Source of the DNA: Mytilus trossulus
Lineage: Eukaryota
Direction of reading: 5' to 3'
Assembly (NCBI RefSeq): GCF_036588685.1
Contig: NC_086377.1
Coordinates: forward strand, 32,798,001-32,862,000
Length of the DNA stretch: 64,000 nucleotides
Shown here: piece after piece, positions 2,415-56,501 of the stretch
Position numbering within the stretch: position 1 is the first letter of the stretch
Layout: each line of letters starts with the position of its first letter
Notes under the pieces: generated by a model
Databases searched by the model: none
Told to the model about the DNA's origin: nothing
The model's input: only the letters and a program-made list of their open reading frames with translations
Made by a program: the position numbers and the translations under genes

Positions 2415-2514
2415 GACTGTCATTAAAGTGAGAGGGTGAGCGCTATAGAACCAGGTTTAATCCACCATTTTCTACATTTGAAAATGCCTGTACCAAGTCA
2501 GAAATATGACAGTT
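2415..2514 (+). ncRNA. Twister-like ribozyme motif, P5 permutation, family B (partly mutated)
   Basis: P5 GACUGUCAU/AUGACAGUU; GUGA-GAGGG; palindromes AGCGCU and AACC-A-GGUU; U^AA; UCC; AC; P3 CAUUUUC/GAAAAUG; P4 CCUG/CAGA; L4 UACCAAGU. Confidence 0.7.
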
Positions 2515-2695: not shown

Positions 2696-4619
2696 CTACA
2701 AAGAAAACATATGGTGTAATGAGAAGCTTAATTATGAAAATTAAAATTCGATTTGCAGTTTTGTTGATTGTTGTTGTCGCTTGCTTAATGTCCAATGAAA
2801 AACATATCATCCATATTTAGGACCAAAGACAATGAAACAAAGTCCAGCAGGAGTTTGGAAGAAAGACTGCTTCTTGAAAATAAAATTATATTGGGTCTGG
2901 GTAAGAAATTGTAACGTTTACGGTAGCTTAGGAACCATTAGAAAGATATTACTGTAGAAGATTCCTGACCGCAAAAGGTGTGTCCTCATTTCCTAATAGA
3001 TATATTCTGACAATACGTGACTGCGTGAATGTAAAACTGGTACAGCCAAACATGTTTGACTGCTAGAATTGAGAATTTTAGGAATGAAAGTATTTCTTAC
3101 AGCCAATCGGCCCATTGTTGGTAGTTTGCCGCATAGCTATGAGGTATACATTTTTACATATTGTGATAGTTTGTTGAAATGCTAAAAATGGTCAGCTAAA
3201 GATAAAGTATAGGGATCGATCTTGTTGATATAATCGATACGACGTAAAGCGTTGTTGACCAACTTGATTCATGTCATTCGTATCCCGCATATTTCAGAGG
3301 TTGATGATGCTCAATTAACGCAGCATGTCATCAAATCTGTATCGCCTATATTGTTTTTAAAAAGGTCTGTACTGCTTTGTTCAGATTCCTATTATATTTA
3401 TTTTTTCGATGGAAAGGACTAAACACATACATTAGCCTATCATGTCTGTAAGGGTTGCTCACCCAATTATTGATAAAATATTTTTACATATACATGTAAA
3501 CCACTGTCTCACAAGATGGAGGTTTATCTAGCTATAAGCTAGCTATAAAGTCATGTTAAACGCACCATTGACTTCTTTACAAAGTCAGGAATGAGCCGGT
3601 TGATTTTATATGTCAATTCGTTCTGTTAGGTAATATAGTTTTACGTTTCCGAATCTCTATTCATTTTGTAACATCATTATCCTTAATTATTGTGATTTTT
3701 CTTACTTACTGCTATTTCTTTTGTGGATAGTTGTCTCATTGGCAATCATCCCACATCTTCTTTTTTAGAAGATCATACTACTTCAAAACTGGTATTTTGT
3801 TATCTTGGAAACTAAATGCCATTTATTTCTGTATGCTGTCATTAGATATTGTTTGGAGGTCAGAGTTCTCTGGTCTTGCAATAAATTTCATAACATTTGA
3901 GGCAAAGCTAACTTGTGGAAACGGCAAGTTTACCATTTCTGTAATTTTTAATGGGACATAACTCAAGAAAGGAGAACATGACACCATATAACGTTTAAGT
4001 TTGTCAGTACTTACGAACTCAAGCCTTATTAAGAACCCGGATCATATCAATACTAATTTTTCATAATCAAAAAGAGTCATAGGTAAGATGTAACTTCATT
4101 AACTATGTAAGGTTGCGCAGCTAAACAATGAATAAACACATCAAAGATACCAAGGTTTAAATTGCGAACGCCAAATCGTCTATGTTGACCATTGTCGCTC
4201 GAATAAAACAAAAAACAAAACAAACTATAAAAAAACCTAAGATATGGATTGTCATATTATGATTGAAGTGATATACCCTTTTTCAAAGAAATGAATTTCA
4301 AGATTAAGGGATTCAATTACATTCATATACAAATGATAAAGTCAATCCAAATTTACCGGAACTTTGGTGTGTTCATTGTTCAAAGTTTTGAAATCGTCAA
4401 CAGAAATTTTGGCAATACCAGCTTGTTACATCTTGCATGTTACTCAGTTGCATATTAGTAAATATATTGACCGCTGTCTTAAATTGAATTGAGTGTTAGT
4501 TTTAAAGATGAAATAATTAGCAACCATAAACTTAAATATAAGGTTTTACTACAACTATCACATACATTTAACATGCTCGCATAAACCAAACAAGAAATAT
4601 GTGAATACCTAACTATCAT

Positions 4620-14782: not shown

Positions 14783-17700
14783 TTAAACTGGTACCTTGAG
14801 TATTGATGATTTCTTTGCTTGGTTCTTCTTCAAACTATTCTTCATCAAATCTCCAACAATTGAACCCATTTTGTCTTTCAATTTCTGTATGATACATGGT
14901 TTCACAACTTCATTTTTGTCAGCGATTTTATCATTTGTATTTTTATAACTTGTTGAACATGTTGGATGAAAAGTACTTCCCTTGTTTATTTCTGTTTGAT
15001 TCATACCTTTATTTAGTTTTATGCTTCCACTTTTATTTGAAACATTGTTTCTTTTTGTATTTCTAACAACTGTTTCTAAATCATCTCTAACATTGTCATG
15101 TGTTATTTGTAATTCTTTCATGAACTTCTCACGTTCCTTACATTTAGAACGAGTATTTTCAACAGTGGGTACCACAAATTCTGACACAGCTGCCTTATAT
15201 CCTTGTATATTGTATGGTAACACTTGTTCTGATACACAGGTTTTATCATTCTGTTGTCTGTTTGTCATTTGTTTAGTGTGATCATTAAATTCTTTACTTG
15301 ACACAGGCATTGATATTTCCTGTTGTGAACTTGTTTTGTATTTTTCAAACTTATTTCTTTCCTCAGTTTTTCTCTGTCCTGCCATGTCTGAATTTCGTTC
15401 AAACATTTTAAAATTAGACATGTAAGTATCACAACCTCCATTTTTAGCAAAATTATCCTGAGAATCTGAAGACTCATTGCCAATATATTTGTCTAAATCA
15501 ACACCTTCATAGACTGCTATACTACCTATGCTACTTGTATCATAACTTTCTTGTCTCTTAAACTTGTTTCTCATAGAGCAGTTTTCATCAAGTTCTTTTT
15601 TCTTATCTGATAAATTGTTGGTAGATTCTTTGTTCAGCTTATTTCTCTTTCTTTTAGGAGAGATTGTTTCATGTTTTTGTTTGGGAAAGCTATTAACTTG
15701 CTGTTCTCTGAGTTGATTGGATAGTATTGTTTCGGCCTCTTCAATACCAATGACTTCAAAGTTTTCTATGTTGTCTCTTGATAAATTTTTCTGTGTTTTT
15801 CTTATTGAGTTGTTCCTTGTTTTCCTACTTTTGCTCTTTTTCTTTTCTTTCTCTGGAAAACCTTCGATTGGGGAATCCTTTTGCAAATCATTACGTTGTA
15901 ATCTTGTATTCTTTTGTCTTGGAACCCGGTTTAATTTCACAGTACATTCACTTACAATTATATTTGCAGTTTTATATCTGTCAGGAGATTTTACCGGTCT
16001 GCCACATCGGGTTTTTGGTACAGTGGCATCTACAAGTTTATTGCACGTTTCCAAATTACTTTGTGATACGATATTTTGTTTTTGCACTTTATGTACAGGA
16101 CTTTGACAGACCATTTCACATTCTGTCGAAAACTGATTTTGCATTTTGGGTTTAATATGACCATTTTGTTTTGGCGGTTTCCTACGATTTGCAGGACCAT
16201 TTCTTTTCCTTGGTCTACTCCTTTGAAGCGTTGACTGTGACTTACTTTTGACGTTTTTTGTAACATTTGATAGATCTTCATTCTTTGTTGATAGCTTTCT
16301 TTTCTTTGCTTGTAGAGGACCTACTGATGTTGGTGTAGGTCCATAAACAATTCCTTTTGGAGGCTGCCTCGAATTGAATTCAAGTAATTTTCCTGACTCA
16401 ATTGCTATTCTTTTCTGTGCAATTCGCCGAGTTGCAAATCTTGTCTTATATATTGGACTTTTCAAATTGAAGAATGGCCCCAATGAGGCATATTGAGTGT
16501 TGTGTATTGGACTTGTTAGTCTAAATGAACCTGTAGATTTATGTGATGAGGCATATTGAGTGTTCTGTATTGGACTTGTTAGTCTAAATGAACCCGTAGA
16601 CTTATGTGATGAGGCGTATTGAGTGTTTTGTATTGTACTTGTTTGACTAAATGAACCTGGAGACCTATGTGATGTACGTGGAGGCTTCTGTAATTTAACA
16701 GAACTATTGTCTCTTTCATTCCTCATCCTTTTTTTAGCTAGCCTTTGTGATGCATATCTGGTCTTATATCTTGGACTCTTTATATAGAGTGGACTTTTTA
16801 CAGAAGATCTTTTAGAACTTGTAGTATCTTCAGAAATGTCCAGAGTTGAATGGTTTAAAAGTCCTTGTGTGCGTACATAACTGTCATGAATATTGGGTGG
16901 ACTCACAGTAATGACTTCTTCGGTGTGTAATGCTTCCTTCTCTGATGTACCAATATTGGAATTAAAAACATCTGAATTACGATTTAGTTTTTTCGTTGCT
17001 ATCTTTACCTCTGCATATCTGGTTTTGTAACTAGGACTATTAATTACAGGCATTTTTCCTGATGCAACAATAGGTGTGTCTAGATTGTTTACCTTTTTCT
17101 CGACTAAAGGTTGAAATGTCCTAATTGTTGGTTCTTTCACACAATGTATATCTAACTTTGGAGAAAGGGTTTCAGTAGAAGAATAATCTGTATCTCTGCT
17201 ACTTTTTTCTAACGACTGAGAATTGTTCTTTTTGCTTAATCTATTTATGTTTATACATTGGGAGACTTTTGTTGACGATATCTTTTTATGGGTTTTTAGT
17301 TTACCATTTGATGAGGAGGGTGTCTTTAGTGGAGACGTTTTCTTGATGCTACTTTCTCTACTACTGTTATCACTTGATTTCTTTTTCATCTTGAAATATC
17401 TTCTTTTCACCATTTCTCTAATACTGGCAACCTTGTCTTCTAATACAGAATTATTCTCACCATACTCTTTTCTAATGTTTGAGACAGCTGATTGAAGTGC
17501 TTTAGTTTCATCATTTGAATCCTTTTGATAGAAAGCATTAGATATAAAAGGTCTATTGTTAATTTTGCTGATTTCAAATTTGAAATTCTTTTTCAACCAT
17601 ATTTTTTTCTTCTTCATGCATCTTTTAGTATGCAACTTTTGATGTGGAATGTCAATTTCTATATCACTTTCTATACTAGAGCAATTATCTGTCATTAGAT

Positions 17701-20700
17701 TATCATCGTCTAAAATGCTACCATCCTCAGATTTACCACTTACAGGACTGTACATACAACTAGCTCCCTGCAGGGTATTTTCCACGCTTGAATTATCGTC
17801 CTCATAACCAATATCCCAGAAATAATCGTGGTCAAAATTGCTTTCTATGTCTGACGAGCAGCTATTTTCAGAAAGAGTCCTCTCTGGTGTAGCATCATCG
17901 TCTGGAACAGTACTATCATCAGCGAGATAACTGCCATGGCTACTCAGTGATTTACGGTCATCGCTATCTATACTACTACAATCTTCAATAGTAGTCTGAT
18001 CAGCCAGGTCATTATCTATGCTGCTACATTCATCAAAAGAACTGCAATACCCCAACATTGGATTTGCAAGAAAAAATGAAACGTTCTGATCAGCTTTAAT
18101 AAAAACACCATCTTTTTGTTTTTTCTTCTTACTAAAACTAATTTCATTATCACTGGATTCAACATTCTGATCAGCTTTAATAAAAACACCATTGTTTTGT
18201 TTTTTCTTCTTACTGAAACTAATTTCATTATCACTAGAATCAATATTCTCATGTGTTTCCTTTGGTGCCCTAATAGTTATTTTAATATTTGGCCGCTTAA
18301 AACTTATTTCAACTTCACTGTCACATGTATCAGACTCTTTTGTCTTTTCAAAACCTCTTTGAGGAGAACTTCTTTTTTTCACAATGTCTCGACTCGCAAA
18401 ACTTATTTCATTTTCACTATCATAGCTTTGTGAATTTTCATGACCATTTCTAATCTTTTTCTTGATGTCTGACTTCTGAAAAATCCTTTTTTTATGAGAC
18501 TGAATAAATGATTTAAATTGGGTCTGTTTATCATCATGAATGTTGTCATGGTAATCCGAGCTATAATTAGACTTTGGAGAGAGACAAGCACTTGATTGAA
18601 GTTTGGGTCGAAATTGCTTACAGATTTCAGTTTTGCCAGAGAAATATTTTCCTAATAAGTTTTCTGACATGTTTTGTCTAAATTTCCTTTCCTGGTCAGT
18701 TTTATTTTCATGAAGAAGACTTGACCCCTTTCCAGTAAATTGTCCCCTGAGATTGTCATTTGGATTCATACCATACATTTCTAAATTCTGATTTTTATTT
18801 TGCATTTGTTCTATGTAGTTCATCCTAGATAAAGAAGAAGCATCATTTCGAATTATATCTTTAGTAAATCTGCCTTTAGTGGCAACAGTGTGCTTAGACA
18901 TGTCTTGAAATAGACTAAAATGTGAAGCTCCATTTTTTACATCCTCTTCTTTTTCAGAATGAAATTTAAGCATGGTATCCTGTTTATCAATAGTATGTTT
19001 TAATTGAAAGTTAGGTGTGTTCGAATTTTTAACATGGCCAAGCTGGCTTAAATCATTATTCAGATTCTCGTCTTTGGTAATGTAAGAACTATTGTCTGGG
19101 TTTACAGCTTTTAAACCAATATGACTCCCAGAAGACATAATACTCCGACCAGATAATCTCCTTCTTCTAGGTTTTGAATCTGTACTGTCATCAGAAAATT
19201 CACTTATATCAATGTTTTCGAATAATGTGATATGCTGGGGTGATGGCCAAGATAATAAATTGTCAGTTCCTGCATAATTAGAAAGTTTCGGCAAATCTAT
19301 CATTTGATCACCAGCTTGATTCAATCTGCCATATTCACCTACACCTGTTGAGTTGAAACTTCCTTGTAATGGCTGATTTATTGTATTCATACGATTTTGC
19401 AATGACCTGACAGTACTACTCACTCCATTTTCCCATAGTTCTAAATGTTCTTCAAATTTGTTGTACTTATTAAAACTAATATCTGGCTGAGTTGAAATTT
19501 TGGGATTTTTTCCTTCTAAAGTTTGTCTATTTTCATATAAAAACTCATTCTGTTTAAGATCCTCTAGCTTTCCAAATAACAAAAATGAAACTGGACCTTT
19601 TTGAGATGAATCTAATTCGATGTTCATTTCATCAGTTTCTCTATGACCTCTATTTGACATTGGATGAAAATGTTTGACTGCTTCGTTGTCTGTATCCTCA
19701 TCATCCGTAGATACGGTAGATGACATACCCTGTTCATCAGAGGTGGCGAGAACATAAATATCTGTCTCAGAATCCATCATAGAGGAGACTGTAACAGTAT
19801 CTGACTCATTCTCTTCTGTTGATGTCTCCTCTGTGGAACACGTTGAAGGTGACCTTGTAAGCTGAATCCCACTCAAACCAGTATGCATATGTCTGATGTG
19901 AGTTTTTAATTGATTGTGCTGTCCAAACCTTGCATGGCAAAGTTTACAAGAAAATGGTCTGGGATGCTTGTGAGTCCTCAAGTGCATTCGTAATTCATTG
20001 TCAAATTGAAATGCACTTGAGCAAAAGTTACACCCAAAAGGCTTCTGGCGTGTATGTTGCAATAAATGAGCATCTAAAAGAGGCTTTTGCATGAATTCTT
20101 TATTGCAAATGTCACATTTGTACGATTGTTTATGATGATTTCCTTCAGAAAGTTTTGATGAGTTTCTGTGTGTCCCATGTTCCTCAATTTCATGTCCTTT
20201 CAGATCAGAAATACTTTCAAAGTATCTGTCACAAAAATTACATGGAAACATTGTTAGTTCATGTAATTTCTTGTGATCTGCTAACCATCCTTTATCTAGA
20301 AATGTCTTATTGCAGATATTACATATATACTGTTCAGGTGTGGACTCTACTAGCTCTGAACATTCAACCGACAACTCATCTGAATCAGCAGGATCATCAA
20401 AATGTTTCAGTCTGTGCATATTTAGTTTGACCATTGATGTGAAAGCCGCAGTACAGTGATCACAAACATGATTCTTACTGTTTTTATGCATTCTATTTTG
20501 ATGTATACGTAGATTTTTTATGGTTGAGTAACTTTTAGAACAGAATCCACATTGATATGGAGTATTTCCTGAATGAACTCGTTCATGGATAAGGAGACTC
20601 TCCTGATTTAGGAATTTCCGATTGCAAAGATTACATTTGAAGTGGTCTTCTCCATTCTCATGCCATTTCATATGTGTTCTAAAATTACCTACCCTTATAA

Positions 20701-20965
20701 AACTTTTATCACATTGATCACACTTATAAGCTTTTTCCTCCTGAGAACTTTTTATTTGTTCTCCATGTGATGAGGTATCCTGTTCAGTGTGTGCACTTGC
20801 CTGATGAAGGATAAGATACTGTTTATTAATGAATGCTGCAGGGCACTGTTCACATCTGAATCTAAATTCAGTCGGCTGATTCTCATGAAGGTCAAGATGA
20901 TTTTTCAGTTCAGTCGGCTTGGAAAATCCAATGTTACACAAGGGACAACCATATAGCTTATCCAT
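14783..20965 (-). CDS. 2060-aa C2H2 zinc-finger protein (11 N-terminal fingers, long low-complexity tail), single coding exon
   Basis: Uninterrupted 6.18-kb ORF. 11 CxxC-x12-Hxxx(x)H fingers in the first ~363 aa, with HSGNTPY and HTRQKPF linkers. Acceptor ttttacag at 20995-21002 and an in-frame TAG just upstream of the ATG. Confidence 0.95.
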   Translation of the reverse strand: MDKLYGCPLCNIGFSKPTELKNHLDLHENQPTEFRFRCEQCPAAFINKQYLILHQASAHTEQDTSSHGEQIKSSQEEKAYKCDQCDKSFIRVGNFRTHMKWHENGEDHFKCNLCNRKFLNQESLLIHERVHSGNTPYQCGFCSKSYSTIKNLRIHQNRMHKNSKNHVCDHCTAAFTSMVKLNMHRLKHFDDPADSDELSVECSELVESTPEQYICNICNKTFLDKGWLADHKKLHELTMFPCNFCDRYFESISDLKGHEIEEHGTHRNSSKLSEGNHHKQSYKCDICNKEFMQKPLLDAHLLQHTRQKPFGCNFCSSAFQFDNELRMHLRTHKHPRPFSCKLCHARFGQHNQLKTHIRHMHTGLSGIQLTRSPSTCSTEETSTEENESDTVTVSSMMDSETDIYVLATSDEQGMSSTVSTDDEDTDNEAVKHFHPMSNRGHRETDEMNIELDSSQKGPVSFLLFGKLEDLKQNEFLYENRQTLEGKNPKISTQPDISFNKYNKFEEHLELWENGVSSTVRSLQNRMNTINQPLQGSFNSTGVGEYGRLNQAGDQMIDLPKLSNYAGTDNLLSWPSPQHITLFENIDISEFSDDSTDSKPRRRRLSGRSIMSSGSHIGLKAVNPDNSSYITKDENLNNDLSQLGHVKNSNTPNFQLKHTIDKQDTMLKFHSEKEEDVKNGASHFSLFQDMSKHTVATKGRFTKDIIRNDASSLSRMNYIEQMQNKNQNLEMYGMNPNDNLRGQFTGKGSSLLHENKTDQERKFRQNMSENLLGKYFSGKTEICKQFRPKLQSSACLSPKSNYSSDYHDNIHDDKQTQFKSFIQSHKKRIFQKSDIKKKIRNGHENSQSYDSENEISFASRDIVKKRSSPQRGFEKTKESDTCDSEVEISFKRPNIKITIRAPKETHENIDSSDNEISFSKKKKQNNGVFIKADQNVESSDNEISFSKKKKQKDGVFIKADQNVSFFLANPMLGYCSSFDECSSIDNDLADQTTIEDCSSIDSDDRKSLSSHGSYLADDSTVPDDDATPERTLSENSCSSDIESNFDHDYFWDIGYEDDNSSVENTLQGASCMYSPVSGKSEDGSILDDDNLMTDNCSSIESDIEIDIPHQKLHTKRCMKKKKIWLKKNFKFEISKINNRPFISNAFYQKDSNDETKALQSAVSNIRKEYGENNSVLEDKVASIREMVKRRYFKMKKKSSDNSSRESSIKKTSPLKTPSSSNGKLKTHKKISSTKVSQCININRLSKKNNSQSLEKSSRDTDYSSTETLSPKLDIHCVKEPTIRTFQPLVEKKVNNLDTPIVASGKMPVINSPSYKTRYAEVKIATKKLNRNSDVFNSNIGTSEKEALHTEEVITVSPPNIHDSYVRTQGLLNHSTLDISEDTTSSKRSSVKSPLYIKSPRYKTRYASQRLAKKRMRNERDNSSVKLQKPPRTSHRSPGSFSQTSTIQNTQYASSHKSTGSFRLTSPIQNTQYASSHKSTGSFRLTSPIHNTQYASLGPFFNLKSPIYKTRFATRRIAQKRIAIESGKLLEFNSRQPPKGIVYGPTPTSVGPLQAKKRKLSTKNEDLSNVTKNVKSKSQSTLQRSRPRKRNGPANRRKPPKQNGHIKPKMQNQFSTECEMVCQSPVHKVQKQNIVSQSNLETCNKLVDATVPKTRCGRPVKSPDRYKTANIIVSECTVKLNRVPRQKNTRLQRNDLQKDSPIEGFPEKEKKKSKSRKTRNNSIRKTQKNLSRDNIENFEVIGIEEAETILSNQLREQQVNSFPKQKHETISPKRKRNKLNKESTNNLSDKKKELDENCSMRNKFKRQESYDTSSIGSIAVYEGVDLDKYIGNESSDSQDNFAKNGGCDTYMSNFKMFERNSDMAGQRKTEERNKFEKYKTSSQQEISMPVSSKEFNDHTKQMTNRQQNDKTCVSEQVLPYNIQGYKAAVSEFVVPTVENTRSKCKEREKFMKELQITHDNVRDDLETVVRNTKRNNVSNKSGSIKLNKGMNQTEINKGSTFHPTCSTSYKNTNDKIADKNEVVKPCIIQKLKDKMGSIVGDLMKNSLKKNQAKKSSILKVPV

Positions 20966-21833
20966 TTTGAAATATGCTTCCTATTTTGTAGTTCCTGTAA
21001 AAAAAATAATGTAAATATCAATGATTCTTGGATATCAAATAAATATGAGAAATTTAACTTAGCTAAGAATAGGTTAAACATAATGCTGTTCCATAATTTA
21101 TTTCTTTTATTTTAAAGATATTTTGCCATTCAAAATTTGACAAAAAAAAACAGTCTAGATTTTATTTTTTTTAAGATTGAAACCTTTTCTAATTCAATAA
21201 CTTTGAAAAATAAAAGAATAATTTCTCCATGGGACACAGATGATGCCCTGCTGGAATAAAACTAAAAAATATAAAGGGCCATACCTCGAGAAAGGTAAAA
21301 GTGGTGCCACTTAAATTTGATCTAGATCTGAATTATGTGGTAATAAACATTGTATACAAGTTTCATATTCTTTGGTTGAGTCAAACTAAACAACCATTGT
21401 AGTATCAAAGTTTAAAATGGACCCACTGGACCATAATCATTTGTTACAGTAATGACTACCAATTTGAAAATGGGACCCAAAACAAAGAATCTTAATTCAC
21501 GGTGACAACAACTATGATGACAGCATATACTTATAAGCCACAAACCTTTGCTGTTGTATAATAAAATTATAAAAGAAAATCTGGTTTGAAAGTAGGTAAA
21601 ATTGAGAATGGAAATGGGGAATGTGTCAAAGAGACAACAACCTGACCAAATAAAAAAACAACAGCAGAAGGTCACCCCAACAGGTCTTCAATGTAGCGAG
21701 AAATTCCCACACCCGGAGGCGTCCTTCAGCTGGCCCCTAAACAAATATATACTAGTTCAGTGATAATGAACGCCATACTAATTTCCAAATTGTACACAAG
21801 AAACTAAAATTAAAATAATACAAGACTAACAAA

Positions 21834-21924
21834 GGCCAGAGGCTCCTGACTTGGGACAGGCGCAAAAATGTGGCGGGGTTAAACATGTTTGTGAGATCTC
21901 AACCCTCCCCCTATACTTCTATCC
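21834..21924 (-). ncRNA. Twister-like ribozyme, P5 permutation, family A, in the 3' region of the element
   Basis: GGGG GAGGG U UGAGAUCUCA C AAACAUGUU U^AA CCCC GC CACA-UUUU-UGCG CCUG UCCCAAGU CAGG A GCCUCUGGCC. Same strand as the RT. Predicted cut between 21881 and 21880. Confidence 0.8.
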
Positions 21925-22236
21925 AATGTAGAAAAGTAAACGCATAACAATACGCACATTAAAATTCAGTTCAAGAGAAGTCAGAGTCTGATGTCAGAAG
22001 ATGAAACCAAAGAAAATAAACAAAATGACAATAATACATAAATAACAACAGACTACTAGCAGTTAACTGACATGCCAGCTCCAGACTTCAATTAAACTGA
22101 CTGAAAGATTATGATTTCATCATATGAACATCAGGCACCATCTTTCCCGTTAGAAGTTTAGTATCATACCATCATAACATATATGAGAAGAACATAACCC
22201 GTGTCATGCCAACAACTGTTTTTAGAATAAATGTGT

Positions 22237-24606: not shown

Positions 24607-25240
24607 AACAAGAGTGCACACACTGAAATGTCTCGCCTTCTTTACTAATCCTTGATACTATCTTGATAGACCTAAATATAAAGCTTTATTACAACTGTCA
24701 CATAAACTCAACATTAACCAAGAAAATGAAACATTGATCAATAAACCATGAAAATGAGGTCAAGGTCAGATGAACCATGTCAGGCAGACATGTACAGCTG
24801 ACAATTCTTCAATACAACAACTATAGTTGACTTATTGCTTAAAAATAAAGAAAAACAGACCAAAACACAAACACTTAAAACTTAGCAATGGACTGTGAAA
24901 ATGAGGTCAAGGTCAAATAAAACCTGCGTATCCGACATATAGATCATAAAATATTTCCATACACCAATTATAGTAGACCTATTGCGTATAGTATAAGAAA
25001 AACAGACCAAAACACAAAAACTTAACTATAACCACTGAACCATGAAAATGAGGTCAAGGTCAGAAGACACCTGTCAGTTGGACATGTACACCTTACAGTC
25101 CTTCCATACACCGAATATACTAGACCTATTGCTTATAGTATCTGAGATATGGACTTGACCACCAAAACTTAACCTTGTTCACTGATCCATGAAATGAGGT
25201 CGAGGTCAAGTGAAAACTGTCTGACAGGCATGAGGACATG
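24607..25240 (+). mobile_element. Helentron-like element (5' part), about 147-bp units x4
   Basis: Head aacaagagtgcacacactgaaatgtctcgcc. gaggtc(a/g)aggtca recurs near 24757, 24903, 25050 and 25197. Confidence 0.7.
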
Positions 25241-25517
25241 AGGCGTAGGGCCCCCCTTAGGAAAAGTTCTGGATCCGCCACAGTTTAAACAAACCTTTTT
25301 CAAATTCTGACAACCTTTTTCTTCTCCATTTAGACTTTTACCATGTTTAAACCTTCACCAAACATTATTTACAACCTGCAAAAGATGATCATGCATATGT
25401 TTCAATAATTCTGTTTTCGCTATAATATAGACATATATATTACATATATAACCTTTGAAGGATATCAGATGTTTCAAAATTTTGTTTGCTGTACAGTATA
25501 TGTAGTATAAATAAATT

Positions 25518-26788
25518 AACTAGAGGCTCTAAAGAGCCTGTGTCGCTCACCTTGGTCTATGTTAATATTAAACATTGTACACAAATGAATTCATGACAAA
25601 ATTGTGTTTTGGTGATGGTGATGTTTTTGAAGATCTTACTTTAATAAACATTTTTGCTGCTTACAATTATCTCTATCTATAACAGTAGTTTCTGTGGAAA
25701 ATGTTAGTAAAAATCTACAAATTTTGTGAAAATTGTTAAAAAATGACTATGAAGGGCAATAACTCCTCAGGGGGTCATTTGACTATTTTGGTCATGTTGA
25801 CTTATTTTTAGTTCTTACTTTACTGTACATTATTGCTGTTTACAGTTTATCTCTATCTATAATAATATTCAAGATAATAACAAAAAAACAGCAAAATTTC
25901 CTCAAAATTACCAATTTAGGGGCAGCAACCTAACAACCGATGATCCAATTCATCTGAAAATTCTAGGGCAGATAGATCTTGACCTGATCAACAATTTTAC
26001 CTCTGTCAGATTTGCTCTTAATGCTTTGTTTTTTGGGTTATAAGCCAAAAACTGCATTTTTCCCCATGTTCTATTTTTAGCCATGGCCGCCAATTTGGTT
26101 GGTTGGCCGAGTTACCGGACACAATTTTTATACTAGATACCCTAAAGATGATTGTGGCCAAGTTTCAATTAATTTGGCCCAGTAGTTTCAGAGGAGAAGA
26201 TTTTTCTAAAAGATAACTAAGATTTACGAAAAATGGTTAAAAATTTACTATAAAGGGCAATAACTCCTACAGTGGTCAACTGACCATTTTGGTCATGTTG
26301 ACTTATTTGTAGATCTTACTTTGCTGAACATTATTGCTGTTTACAGTTTTTCTCTATCTATAATAATATTCAAGAAAATAACCAAAAACAGCAAAATTTC
26401 CTTAAAATTACCGATTCAGGGGCAGCAACCTAACAACGGAATGTCAGATTCATCTGAAAATGTTAGAGCAGATAGATCTTAACCTGATAAACAATTTCAC
26501 CCTTTGTCAGATTTGCTCTAAATGCTTTGGTTTTTGAATTATAAGCCAAAAACTGCATTTTACCCCTATGTTCTATTTTTAGCCATGGCGGCCATCTTGG
26601 TTGGTTGGCAGGGTCACCGGACACAATTTTTAAACTAGATACCTCAATGATGATTGTGGCCAAGTTTGGTTAAATTTGGCCCAGTAGTTTCAGAGGAGAA
26701 GATTTTTGTAAAAGTTAACGCAGGACGACGACGACGGACGCCAAGTGATGAGAAAAGCTCACTTGGCCCTTCGGGCCAGGTGAGCTAA
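25518..26788 (+). mobile_element. Complete Helentron-like (pearl/HINE-type) non-autonomous element
   Basis: 5' hairpin aggctc-taaa-gagcct and subTIR gctcacct/aggtgagc. Internal 500-bp period (25921 vs 26421), GAC/GACG microsatellite, 3' hairpin gctcacttggccc-ttc-gggccaggtgagc. Confidence 0.85.
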
Positions 26789-31300: not shown

Positions 31301-31771
31301 TAAAATTGAGAATGGAAATGGGGAATGTGTCAAAGAGACAACAACCCGACCAAATAAAAAAACAACATCAGAAGGTCACCAACAGGTCTTCAATGTAGCG
31401 AGAAATTCCCGCACCTGGAGGCGTCCTTCAGCTGGCCCCTAAACAAATATATACTAGTTCAGTGATAATGAACGCCATACTAATTTCCAAATTGTACACA
31501 AGAAACTAAAATTAAAATAATACAAGACTAACAAAGGCCAGAGGCTCCTGACTTGGGACAGGCGCAAAAATGCGGCGGGGTTAAACATGTTTGTGAGATC
31601 TCAACCCTCCCCCTATACCTAACCAATGTAGAAACGTAAACGCATAACAATACGCACATTAAAATTCAGTGCAAGAGAAGTCTGAGTCTGATGTCAGAAG
31701 ATGTAACTAAAGAAAATAAACAAAATGACAATAATACATAAATAACAACAGACTACTAGCAGTTAACTGAC
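31301..31771 (-). mobile_element. 5'-truncated copy of the Penelope-like 3' region (family A)
   Basis: Nearly identical to 21597-22071, with the same 3' terminus. Confidence 0.9.
31536..31624 (-). ncRNA. Twister-like ribozyme, P5 permutation, family A, core fully intact
   Basis: P5 AGGU/GCCU; P2 GGGG/CCCC; GAGGG; U^AA; GC; P3 CGCA/UGCG; P4 CCUG/CAGG; L4 UCCCAAGU. Predicted cut between 31583 and 31582. Confidence 0.82.
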
Positions 31772-32641: not shown

Positions 32642-33951
32642 CAAGAGCATGAAGCGTAAATACTCCAGTGTCTTGCCTATTTTTGCTGTAAATCGCAGTC
32701 TCAACAACCATGAGGAAAAAAATCAATAAAAATAAGTCCATTTAAAAGTAAATTACAGAAAAAACAGAGTAATCTTTTTACAAACTTTACTTCTGGATAC
32801 AATCTTATGATCATAAATAAACTTCTGTTCAAGTTTGGTACAAACCCAGGATAGTTTAAGAAAGTTATTGAAATTTTAAAAACTTTAACCACAGAGTGAA
32901 TGTAATAGTTCCCCGCAGAAAAAACAGAGTCCATTTAAAAGTAAAATGTGGAAAAAATGGATTTATTTATTTACAAAATTTACTTCTGGATACTATCTTA
33001 TGATCATAAACAAGCTTCTGTCCAAGTTTGGTACAAACCCAGGATAGTTTAAGAAAGTTATTAAATTCTAAAAACTTTAACCACAGAGTGAATGTAATGT
33101 TTCCCCCCAGAAAAAAACTAAGTCCATTTTTAAGTACATGTAAAATACGGAAAAAATGGAATTTAATTTTTAGAAAATTTACTTCTGGATATTATCTTAT
33201 GATCATAAACAAGCTTCTGTCCAAGTTTGGTACAAACCCAGGATAGTTTGAGAAAGTTATCAAAATTCTAAAAACTTTAACCACAGAGTGAATGTAATAG
33301 TTCCCCGCAGAAAAAACAGAGTCCATTTAAAAGTAAAATGTGGAAAAAATGGATTTATTTATTTACAAAATTTACTTCTGGATACTATCTTATGATCATA
33401 AACAAGCTTCTGTCCAAATTTGGTACAAACCCAGGATAGTTTAAGAAAGTTATTAAAATTCTAAAAACTTTAACCACAGAGTGAATGTAATGTTTCCCCC
33501 CAGAAAAAAACTAAGTCCATTCATAAGTAAAATACGGAAAAAATGGAATTTTATTTTTATAAAATTTACTTCTGGATATTATCTTATGATCATAAACAAG
33601 CTTCTGTCCCAGTTAGGTACAAACCCAGGATAGTTTGAGAAAGTTATCAAAATTCTAAAAACTTTAACCACAGAGTGAATGTTTTGTTTCCCCTAAGAAA
33701 AAACTAAGTCCATTTATAGAAAAATACGGAAAAAATGGAATTTTATTTTTACAAACTTTACTTCTGGATACTATCTCATGATCATAAACAAGCTTTTGTC
33801 CAAGTTTGGTAGAAATCCAGTATAGTTTAAGAAAGTTATTAAAATTTCAAAAACTTTAACCACAGAGTGAATATTTGTTGACGCCGCCAACGACCGAATG
33901 TAGGATCGCTTAGTCTCGCTTTTTCGACTAAAGTCGAAGGCTCAACAAAAA
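32642..33951 (+). mobile_element. Helentron-like element with about 195-bp satellite x6
   Basis: actttaaccacagagtgaat recurs near 32882, 33074, 33274, 33467, 33661 and 33853. 3' hairpin ttcgact-aa-agtcgaa then an A-run. Confidence 0.85.
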
Positions 33952-34552
33952 TGAGACTTTCAACCATGTCATTGATTGTGCTTAACATAAATACTTTTCT
34001 TTTACCTGGTGTAAGTGGTCATGAATTTATTAACAGTACATTTAGTAAAAATTCCTATAAAATCAATTTAGTGTCAATATGTCATTTTAAAGTCATACAT
34101 TTTATTTAAAAGTATGTCAAACAAATTTTTTTTTTTTTTATATAAAATTCTTCAATACTATAACATTGCATAATGTTTAAAATTCATAAAATTGTTAAAT
34201 AGCAGTGAAATTGGTAAATTATTTAAATCTTTAAAACATCTTTTGTACTAATATTATACATGTTGTATATTTAATGTATGAAACGGTACATTAAACATGT
34301 TAAACATGAATTCCAAAATGTTTCAATAACATTGACATTCATATCATGCTACATTTGTACGTATACATTATACACATTATATACACAATATCTTATTAAA
34401 CTACATTTGATTGCTTTAAAGAGAAATAATATTTAATCATTTGATATGCACATTTAATAACTAGCTATTATAATGCACATGATGCATTAAAATAAAGAAA
34501 GACAAATTTCAAAGTATATATTACATGTATTAATGAATATAAAGTTAAAAAA

Positions 34553-35458
34553 TTTGTAAGGGTTCCGCGGAACCTAGTGTCTCGCCTACTTTTGCTGTAA
34601 CTCCCAGGCTAAACAAAAATGACAAAAACAATCAATAAAAATATTCCTCTTGATACTATCTTTTGATTGTAAGATGCTTCTGTCTAACATGTCCAAGTTT
34701 GGTAAAAATTTCAGGATAGTTTATGAATCAAATAATTTTTTTAAAAACTTTAACTGCAGACTGTTTGTAATGTTAACTGGAAGAAAAACTAAGTCCATTT
34801 ATAAGTAAAATACAGATAGACTGCAGGTACCAAATATTAACAAAATTTCCTTTCTAGATACTAGCATTTGATCATAAACAAGCTTCTGTCCAAGTTTGGT
34901 ACAAATTTAAAATAGTATAAGAAATTCAGTTATCAAATTTTTTAAAAATTTAACCACAGAGGATCGAATGTGTTGTTTCCTGGCAGAAAACCTAAGTCCA
35001 TTTAAAGGTATAATACAGAAAAAATGGATTTTTTTTTTTAATTTACTTCTGGATACTATCTTATGATCATAAACAAGCTTCTGTCCAAGTTTGGTAGAAA
35101 TCCAGTATAGTTTAAGAAAGATATTCAAATTTTAAAAACTTTAACCACAGAGTGAATGTAATGTTTCCCCGCAGAAAAACTAAGACCATTTATAATTAAA
35201 ATACAGAAAAAATAGAATTTTATTTTTACAAAATTTACTTCTGGATACTATCTTACACAATGTATGATCATAAACAAGCTTCTGTCCATGTTTGGTAGAA
35301 ATCCAGTATAGTTTAAGAAAGTTATTAAAGGTTCAAAAACTTTAACCACAGAGTGAATATTTGTGGAAGCCGAGGCCGCCGACGACGACATCGATGATGA
35401 TGGAATGTAGGATCGCTTAGTCTTGCTTTTTCAACTAAAGTCGAAGGCTTGACAAAAA
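34553..35458 (+). mobile_element. Second copy of the same Helentron-like family, about 4 units
   Basis: 5' palindrome ggttccgcggaacc then gtctcgcct. Same 195-bp unit and same 3' end as 32642-33951. Confidence 0.85.
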
Positions 35459-56231: not shown

Positions 56232-56501
56232 AAGTAAGATGTGGTGTGCGTGCCAATGAGAATACCCTCCATCCAAAAAACAATTTAAAAAAATAAATAA
56301 AGTTAACAATTATTTTCGGCCTTCTAGTGTAAAACCATTCAAACGGGAAAACCAACGGTCTAATCTATATAATAAAACGAGAAACGAGAAGCACGTATAC
56401 ATTACATAAACAAACGACAACTACTGTACATCAGATTTCTGACTTAGGACAGGTGCAAACATTTGTAGCGGGGTCAAACGTTTTAATGGATCAAAACCTT
56501 C
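56232..56501 (-). mobile_element. Family C short repeat with a twister-like motif (56431-56501), 5'-truncated
   Basis: GAAGG UUU UGAUCCA UU AAAACGUU UGA CCCC GC UACAA-AUGU-UUGCA CCUG UCCUAAGU CAGA AAUCUGA. Ends in the ...cattggcacgcacaccacatctt terminus. Confidence 0.7.

Follow-up and report, generated by a model that had tools for sequence, protein, structure and literature searches.

A type-P5 twister motif with two tandem palindromes in place of helix P1 in a Penelope-like retroelement of Mytilus trossulus

The ribozyme motif and its locus

The window analysed here, that is, the whole stretch of 64,000 nucleotides of Mytilus trossulus DNA, contains two copies of a repeat (31301-31771 and 21597-22071), which are 97-99% identical to each other and both belong to a retroelement family that we call family A. 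The first of them is 97-98% identical to the 40 genomic copies that were scored, out of 3348 candidates. Each copy holds a twister ribozyme motif on the minus strand. The features of the two loci are listed below, those of the ribozyme in the 5' to 3' order of the minus strand.

31301-31771, minus strand: family A 3'-tail copy of 471 bp, 5'-truncated and dead, which holds the ribozyme
31536-31624, minus strand: type-P5 twister motif without P1 (strict pattern with 9836 matches in the genome, reversed control with 0)
31617-31624, minus strand: 5' arm of P5, GGUUAGGU, with a 2-nt deletion relative to the GGYUAGAGG of most copies
31610-31613, minus strand: 3' strand of P2, GGGG
31605-31609, minus strand: L1 GAGGG, whose GGG forms pseudoknot T1 with the CCC of L4
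31594-31603, minus strand: palindrome 1, UGAGAUCUCA, 1 nt past L1, at the expected start of the 3' strand of P1
31583-31592, minus strand: palindrome 2, AAACAUGUUU, ending at U-1
31583 (U) / 31582 (A), minus strand: predicted cleavage site U^A
31581-31582, minus strand: L1 AA
31577-31580, minus strand: 5' strand of P2, CCCC
31575-31576, minus strand: L2 GC, pseudoknot T2
31563-31574, minus strand: P3 hairpin, CGCA-UUUU-UGCG
31547-31562, minus strand: P4 with L4, CCU-GUCCCAAGU-CAGG
31536-31544, minus strand: 3' arm of P5, CCUCUGGCC
21834-21924, minus strand: second family A twister, inside the element copy 21597-22071 and downstream of remnants of a reverse-transcriptase ORF, with both palindromes intact and substitutions in P5a and P3

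Read from 31624 to 31536, the minus strand presents every conserved twister element in the circular permutation of type P5. Its 5' part runs through P5a GGUUAGGU, AUA, P2' GGGG, L1 GAGGG, U, UGAGAUCUCA, C and AAACAUGUUU^AA, and its 3' part through P2 CCCC, GC, the P3 hairpin CGCA-UUUU-UGCG, CCU-GUCCCAAGU-CAGG, A and P5b (G)CCUCUGGCC. The core comprises P2, P3, P4, P5, loop L1 (UAA/GAGGG) and loop L4 (GUCCCAAGU). As in known twisters, L1 has U^AA on its 5' side and GAGGG on its 3' side, P4 is closed by an L4 loop of the form GUCCCAAGY, and P2 and the pseudoknots T1 (GGG of L1 with CCC of L4) and T2 (GC of L2 with GY of L4) are present, with covariation among eight sequences from one genome. The P1 helix that a twister carries next to its cleavage site is missing. 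This analysis confirms that the minus strand at 31536-31624 is a type-P5 permuted twister motif with a complete core and without the P1 helix.

In place of P1, the 22 nt from GAGGG to AA contain two perfect 10-nt palindromes, and two non-overlapping palindromes of such length in a 22-nt segment have a probability of 4e-5 (100,000 shuffles). Since palindromes 1 and 2 of this copy have no complementarity to each other, P1 cannot form in cis. The initial annotation of this DNA had described both the lack of a normal P1 duplex between GAGGG and U^AA and the two adjacent self-complementary blocks in its place; both descriptions were borne out, the first also by an Rfam alignment that skips P1. This alignment was obtained on an intact sister copy (L063), to which the Twister-P5 model (RF02684) aligns over its full length, positions 1-58, skipping 20 P1 positions and reaching a score of 23.1 bits, below the gathering score of 37.6. 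At gathering level, the search of the whole 64-kb window with Rfam returned zero matches to any model, hammerheads included, and a permissive search gave for the window copy just a partial match to twister-P1 of 13 bits. The catalytic core is that of a twister and not that of a hammerhead, and Rfam thresholds overlook more than 16,000 twister copies of this kind in a single genome.

The host element and its ribozyme families

Genomic copies of the element have a sharp 3' end (...CAATTTTA) and variable 5' ends, from which we conclude that they derive from retrotransposition with 5' truncation; the sense strand carries the ribozyme. The ribozyme is located about 280 nt from the 3' end of the element, downstream of the reverse-transcriptase ORF, and longer copies reach more than 3.2 kb further upstream and encode the reverse transcriptase. 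Its motifs include PKLHK and YLDD, in addition to DKA and CxC. The DKA motif and the CxC upstream of it were read by eye in the ORFs of one locus, L032 (...PADKAANN... and ...SCNCSN..., with a YxDD core), and this combination is diagnostic of Naiad-type Penelope-like elements (Craig et al., PMC8557442). On these motifs, the host element is a Naiad-type Penelope-like retroelement. The homologues of its reverse transcriptase are eukaryotic retroelement enzymes, the nearest protein cluster being molluscan, and a scan of viral contigs with the reverse-transcriptase alignment retrieved zero relatives. A Pfam search on the element ORFs, in sequence that falls short of the true 5' end, gave no significant domain and no GIY-YIG endonuclease.

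Among Penelope-like elements, Naiads are the most abundant in bivalves and in numerous other invertebrates; they have been reported without canonical hammerheads, which are found in all the other clades, and twister goes unmentioned in their description (PMC8557442). In the literature that we searched, no link of twister to Penelope-like elements was found. As for other features of the window, an open reading frame of 2060 aa (14783-20965, minus strand) lies just downstream of the element copy 21597-22071, and tandem repeats with periods of about 193 nt (8-9 units), 147 nt, and about 500 nt, unrelated to the ribozyme, occur on the plus strand at 32667-35372 and 24716-26719.

The genome (1.3 Gb) was searched with strict patterns, which for families A and D together was GAGGG, gap, TAA, N4, GC, gap, GTCCCAAG, with the same pattern reversed as control. 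Matches numbered 9836 for families A and D, 3354 for family B, and 3164 for family C, with 0 for the reversed controls. The total on strict patterns exceeds 16,000 genomic copies, against 0-1 for the reversed-pattern controls. The layout of two palindromes is retained, with differing sequences, in four to five families, always in the order L1, 1-2 nt, palindrome 1, a linker of 1-3 nt, and palindrome 2 ending at or next to U-1. The families are described below by their commonest natural copies rather than by a consensus or a repaired element, and the forms of B, C, and E were counted by eye among the first 100 matches listed.

Family A: P5 GGYUAGAGG/CCUCUGGCC; P3 CGCA/UGCG; palindrome 1 UGAGAUCUCA; palindrome 2 AAACAUGUUU
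Family D: P5 CAGGU/GCCUG plus CCACUG/CAGUGG; P3 ACAU/AUGU; palindrome 1 UGGGAUCCCG; palindrome 2 AACAUGUU
Family B: P5 ACUGUCAU/AUGACAGU; P3 AUUUUC/GAAAAU; L2 ACC; palindrome 1 UAGCGCUA (B1) or UAGCUAGCUA (B2); palindrome 2 AACC-A-GGUU
Family C: P5 UCAGA/UCUGA; P2 UCCC/GGGA; P3 UGCAAA/UUUGCA; L1 GAAGG; L4 GUCCUAAG; palindrome 1 in three forms of UGG(GC/AU/UA)CCA, namely UGGGCCCA, UGGAUCCA, and UGGUACCA; palindrome 2 AAACGUUU
Family E (old): palindrome 1 UUGGAUCCAA in one copy, the other E copies resembling a CpG-decayed GGCGCC; palindrome 2 AAACUAGUUU

Two of these families are also represented in the window.

2416-2513, plus strand: family B copy, with AGCGCU at 2439-2444, AACCAGGUU at 2449-2457, the cut site at 2458/2459, and GUACCAAGU as L4
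56431-56501, minus strand: family C copy, 5'-truncated at L1 (GAAGG), with palindrome 1 decayed to UGAUCCA, AAACGUUU at 56476-56483, and the A after the cut site mutated to G

Both copies agree with the initial annotation, which had given AGCGCU plus AACC-A-GGUU for family B and a decayed UGAUCCA for family C. Its broader claim, that the other families keep the layout with different sequences, also stood, as palindromicity is maintained across the copies and families of this one genome. The commonest genomic forms of families B and C have intact palindromes, unlike the family C copy of the window with its decayed palindrome 1. In addition, the plus strand at 3500-3600 holds a B-like copy in decay, in which UAGCUA units are duplicated (3528-3545) and what is left of the P4 region reads ...AAAGUCAGGAAUGAG.

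The P5 arms are family-specific and complementary within each family, and P3 also covaries between families. The pseudoknots follow the same trend: in family C, the GAAGG of L1 coexists with GUCCUAAG in L4, a compensatory change that puts an A-U pair in the place of a G-C pair in T1, and in family B, the ACC of L2 coexists with an L4 ending in ...AAGU, producing an A-U pair in T2. In an alignment of eight sequences from one genome, 91.7% of the cells of the core structure were paired, compared to 24-45% in slid controls, and five pairs were found changed on both sides, compared to 0-1 in these controls; the both-side changes include the P2 pair 21-53, the T1 pairs 24-91 and 26-89, and P3. Pairs were counted on the core only, as MAFFT set the palindromes of families C and B out of register. 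The core pairing and the both-side changes, set against the slid controls, argue that the twister fold has been maintained by selection in the source elements, for which catalytic activity is predicted. The commonest form of family B presents a G-A mismatch in T1, which one B2 copy restores to a U-A pair; given this mismatch, family B may be weakly active.

Self-complementary blocks and probable pairing between copies

For the A, D, and C forms, shuffling of the segment of 21-24 nt gives a probability of 3e-5 to 9e-4 for two perfect palindromes that do not overlap and are each 8 nt or longer. Palindrome 1 exists in at least seven distinct perfect forms among multi-copy lineages, and at least seven compensatory events were counted in it, a direct count with no formal phylogenetic test behind it; all the families are from a single genome and of common descent, so that the independent events are modest in number. 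Among the 100 matches listed for family C, the centre of palindrome 1 was GGGCCC in 48, GGAUCC in 33, and GGUACC in 11, and the remaining ones were 7 non-palindromic single variants and 1 family A copy. The centre is therefore palindromic in 92 of the 99 family C copies among the matches listed, and non-palindromic intermediates appear as singletons only. Within the matched 64 nt, the sole difference between the three family C subfamilies is the central dinucleotide of palindrome 1 (GC, AU, or UA), with the centre self-complementary in all three. Likewise, B1 (UAGCGCUA) and B2 (UAGCUAGCUA) differ by a central UA, and palindrome 2 has CAUG, CG, CUAG, or CCGG at its centre. Self-complementarity, the centres included, has thus been under selection. 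Imperfect blocks are carried by a D subfamily with UUUGGAUCCCG, where an outer pair is lost, and by family B, whose palindrome 2 has an odd central A that would produce an A-A mismatch in a duplex. Family C copies with GGUACC show more private substitutions than those with GGAUCC or GGGCCC, which suggests a successive replacement of source elements in this family, each bringing a new self-complementary centre.

A hairpin, with at least three unpaired bases in its loop, leaves the centre of an 8-nt palindrome unconstrained; as the centre covaries, the whole palindrome must pair, and such pairing of the whole block requires a second copy of the same block. A second copy of either palindrome was not found elsewhere in the 3.3-kb element, which points to another ribozyme copy as the partner, so that pairing between two copies is well supported by these comparisons. 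As in the dimeric ribozymes of other Penelope-like elements, the closing helix is both unstable in cis and self-complementary. In cofolding with a nested model that ignores pseudoknots, palindrome 1 is predicted to pair in trans, and the dimer is favoured by -8 to -16 kcal/mol. The initial annotation had proposed that the palindromes may pair between two copies and that cleavage would depend on it; the first part is strengthened by the compensatory changes, those at the centres included, and the dependence of cleavage on the dimer is plausible. On a separate note, in families A, B, and C the GG(G)UU that follows L1 could pair with AA(Y)CC at the cut site and beginning of P2, a pairing that appears in the nested minimum-free-energy fold and possibly represents an inactive alternative fold of the monomer.

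On this basis we propose a dimer model, to which we give about an even chance, in which the palindromes would pair across two ribozyme copies, replacing P1 and favouring cleavage where two copies meet. In the geometry that we infer, the strands of P1 would be replaced by two self-complementary segments joined by a linker of 1-3 nt, whose hairpins of 2-3 bp would be unstable within one molecule. Two copies, either on separate RNAs or within a tandem (pLTR) transcript, would pair through their palindromes 1 and, separately, through their palindromes 2. Strands of the type X-linker-Y could form X:X and Y:Y together, as antiparallel helices lying side by side with a U-turn through each linker, and the result would be two helices of 8-10 bp with one ribozyme core per end. 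The GAGGG entry and the U^AA exit of each molecule would be at the same end of the bundle, and at each end the core stack would meet helices X and Y in a three-way junction in substitution of P1, the same junction as that of a monomer with two hairpins but made by strand exchange. A lone copy would be poorly active, which would leave the 3' tail on the RNA used as template for retrotransposition, and only the meeting of two copies would favour cutting, as in the dimeric minimal hammerheads of other Penelope-like elements. A stricter version, possible but in our opinion doubtful, is that of an obligate-dimer twister, where P1 would be formed only by strand exchange between copies and the central bases GC, AU, or UA would constitute a pairing code of the subfamilies. 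If this were true, only RNAs of the same subfamily would activate each other, and the system would represent convergence with the dimeric hammerheads known from other Penelope-like clades.

Alternatively, the twister could be constitutively active without P1, with the palindromes acting as RNA dimerisation sites for another step of the life cycle (template jumps/pLTRs or co-packaging) and occupying the position of P1 merely because insertions are tolerated there. We regard this as unlikely, in spite of several points that speak for it. According to high-throughput assays and previous studies, twister cleavage in vitro can dispense with P1 and is not lowered by imperfections in it (PMC11662667; PMC8501958), in agreement with the tolerance of P1 truncation stated in the initial annotation, and a monomer might consequently cut without a dimer. 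Furthermore, the covariation of the centres reflects pairing in trans and is silent on catalysis, and Penelope-like elements typically insert as partial tandems (PMC8557442). However, both palindromes are found exactly at the P1 strand positions in every family, and a cut about 280 nt from the 3' end would split the ORF from the 3' tail.

The 5' ends of the insertions bear on this alternative too. Reverse transcription of RNAs cut at U^AA would produce many family A insertions whose first bases are exactly AACCCC. Nearly all those listed from the 279 family A copies with a base other than T before AACCCC were full copies with a point change, and only about 3-4 per 100 matches listed had unrelated upstream sequence, that is, a 5' end at the cut site. 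At a control site 6 nt downstream, the figure was about 3 per 100 matches listed, so that no excess above background exists at the cut site, and around ten thousand insertions span it. This lack of excess implies that cutting there practically never happens to the template RNA, for which the ORF and the 3' tail are both required. It fits a ribozyme that would be silent as a single copy, and it also fits cut fragments that never serve as templates, or a low activity of the ribozyme in vivo.

Regarding the arrangement of the copies, most of them are solo. Among about 100 loci in the first 10 Mb of contig 1, a direct pair occurs once, its members separated by about 4 kb, and inverted pairs occur a few times. 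For family C, tandem arrays similar to those of retrozymes were considered, with a period of 473 bp as the one period tested, and discarded, as a single occurrence, just one pair, was found. Inverted pairs of family A tails 3.1-3.5 kb apart were observed at L018/L019 (G000:C9:70002763-70006798), C1:80996/84249, and C1:1702964/1706085, in the head-to-head arrangement described for Penelope-like insertions.

Returning to the palindromes, each of them could fold in cis as a mini-hairpin, and P1 would be replaced, in a monomer, by a three-way junction. The topology of this junction would be the same as that of the dimer, and the outer pairs of both blocks covary as such hairpins would have them do. 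Nevertheless, the hairpins would have just 2-3 bp, the inner pairs of UGGGCCCA, UAGCGCUA, and AAACGUUU are impossible around a loop of 0-2 nt, and the centre stays self-complementary through the GC/AU/UA changes and through central insertions, which makes this explanation very unlikely. We give even less credence to palindromes working at the DNA level without RNA function, either as sites for dimeric proteins (e.g., the endonuclease of the element) or as products of template switching. All the forms are indeed DNA palindromes similar to restriction sites, and Penelope-like elements are prone to inserting beside earlier copies (PMC6765202). Against this, nothing but self-complementarity is conserved among GAGATCTC, GGGATCCC, TAGCGCTA, GGGCCC, and GGTACC, which makes a protein with sequence specificity improbable. 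Snap-back templating, for its part, has no way of copying the centre of an 8-nt palindrome without spacer, and the blocks coincide exactly with the positions of the P1 strands in an RNA motif. Finally, an inactive hitch-hiking relic of a twister, with palindromes due to chance or inheritance, would account for the score under the Rfam threshold and for the damage seen in every window copy, but is the least probable of all in view of the compensatory changes in P2, P3, P5, T1, and T2 between families, the invariant core nucleotides, and palindromes that are significant against shuffles and maintained through at least seven sequence forms.

Relation to known ribozymes

The motif is a real twister variant, not known to have been described before with two palindromes for P1. 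It shares with the type-P5 twister (RF02684, clan CL00120) the permutation, the UAA/GAGGG loop, P2, the GC of L2, an optional P3, P4 with the GUCCCAAGY loop, the pseudoknots T1 and T2, and the open end at P5. In contrast to the 8-bp P1 hairpin of the RF02684 model, the Mytilus motif has two tandem self-complementary blocks.

The closest parallel in the biology of these elements is given by the dimeric minimal hammerheads present in the pLTRs of Penelope-like elements (Cervera and de la Pena 2014, PMC4209133; Lunse et al. 2017 on dimeric hammerheads, as cited in PMC6765202). Their helix III has 1-2 bp and a small loop that is palindromic, and it is as dimers that they cleave, the single motif being inactive (PMC4209133; PMC6765202), in line with what the initial annotation had stated on minimal retroelement hammerheads with a palindromic stem III. 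In both cases the ribozyme is in a terminal region of a Penelope-like element, its closing helix is palindromic and too short in cis, and the sequences are highly variable yet covarying within one genome. They differ in that a hammerhead with one palindrome is found there and a twister with two palindromes here, and in the host, as Naiads were described without canonical hammerheads (PMC8557442). Moreover, dimer-dependent cleavage has been demonstrated for the hammerheads, whereas the twister is known from its sequence.

Twisters in retrotransposons with an unconventional P1 have also been described as T-variants in Perere-3 of Schistosoma (2021, PMC8501958). Those are of type P1 and located at the 5' end of the element, the 5' strand of their P1 comes from the target-site duplication, and the insertions have 5' ends at the cut site. 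The Mytilus twister, on the contrary, is of type P5 and close to the 3' end, and shows no excess of insertion 5' ends at the cut site.

At the level of the palindromes, a further likeness exists with retroviral RNAs. Their palindromic dimer initiation sites are placed in the loops of stable hairpins and serve genome dimerisation. As in the twister, these are short self-complementary sequences whose centres vary by lineage, providing lineage-specific RNA-RNA pairing; the twister blocks differ in having no supporting stem and in being inside a ribozyme.

A twister in the position of the hammerhead in Naiads would imply that Penelope-like elements in general require a self-cleaving ribozyme of some kind. 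If dimeric by design, it would be the first twister in nature to operate in this way and a second, independent case of a copy-number-sensing ribozyme in Penelope-like elements. This makes an old question open to direct testing, namely what the ribozymes of these elements are for and the reason for their being dimeric.

A scan of metagenomes retrieved mostly chance bacterial matches, one low-GC contig resembling eukaryotic sequence, and one family of tandem twisters, the prokaryote-like twisters of the same scan having ordinary loops. The low-GC contig (L160; JYMV01044764.1, 33% GC, with no ORF of 100 aa or more) presents the same layout at 1655-1814 on the minus strand, with GAGGG, a decayed palindrome 1 (GGGUCC), AACCGGUU as palindrome 2 directly before U^AA, and GUCCCAAGU as L4. 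It is the only case from another source, and gives a hint that the layout may exist outside the Mytilus genome.

The tandem family consists of type-P5 twisters spaced 350-600 bp apart on three contigs, Ga0098035_1041916 (L117:84-1560), Ga0098047_10005786 (L180:576-3630), and Ga0098034_1005328 (L183:986-3470). These twisters pass the Rfam threshold (54.6 bits) with a canonical P1, which is itself a perfect palindrome of 30 nt with UUUAAA at its centre and compensatory changes between repeats. In their organisation, the arrays look like a twister counterpart of the hammerhead retrozymes, probably belonging to a marine organism.
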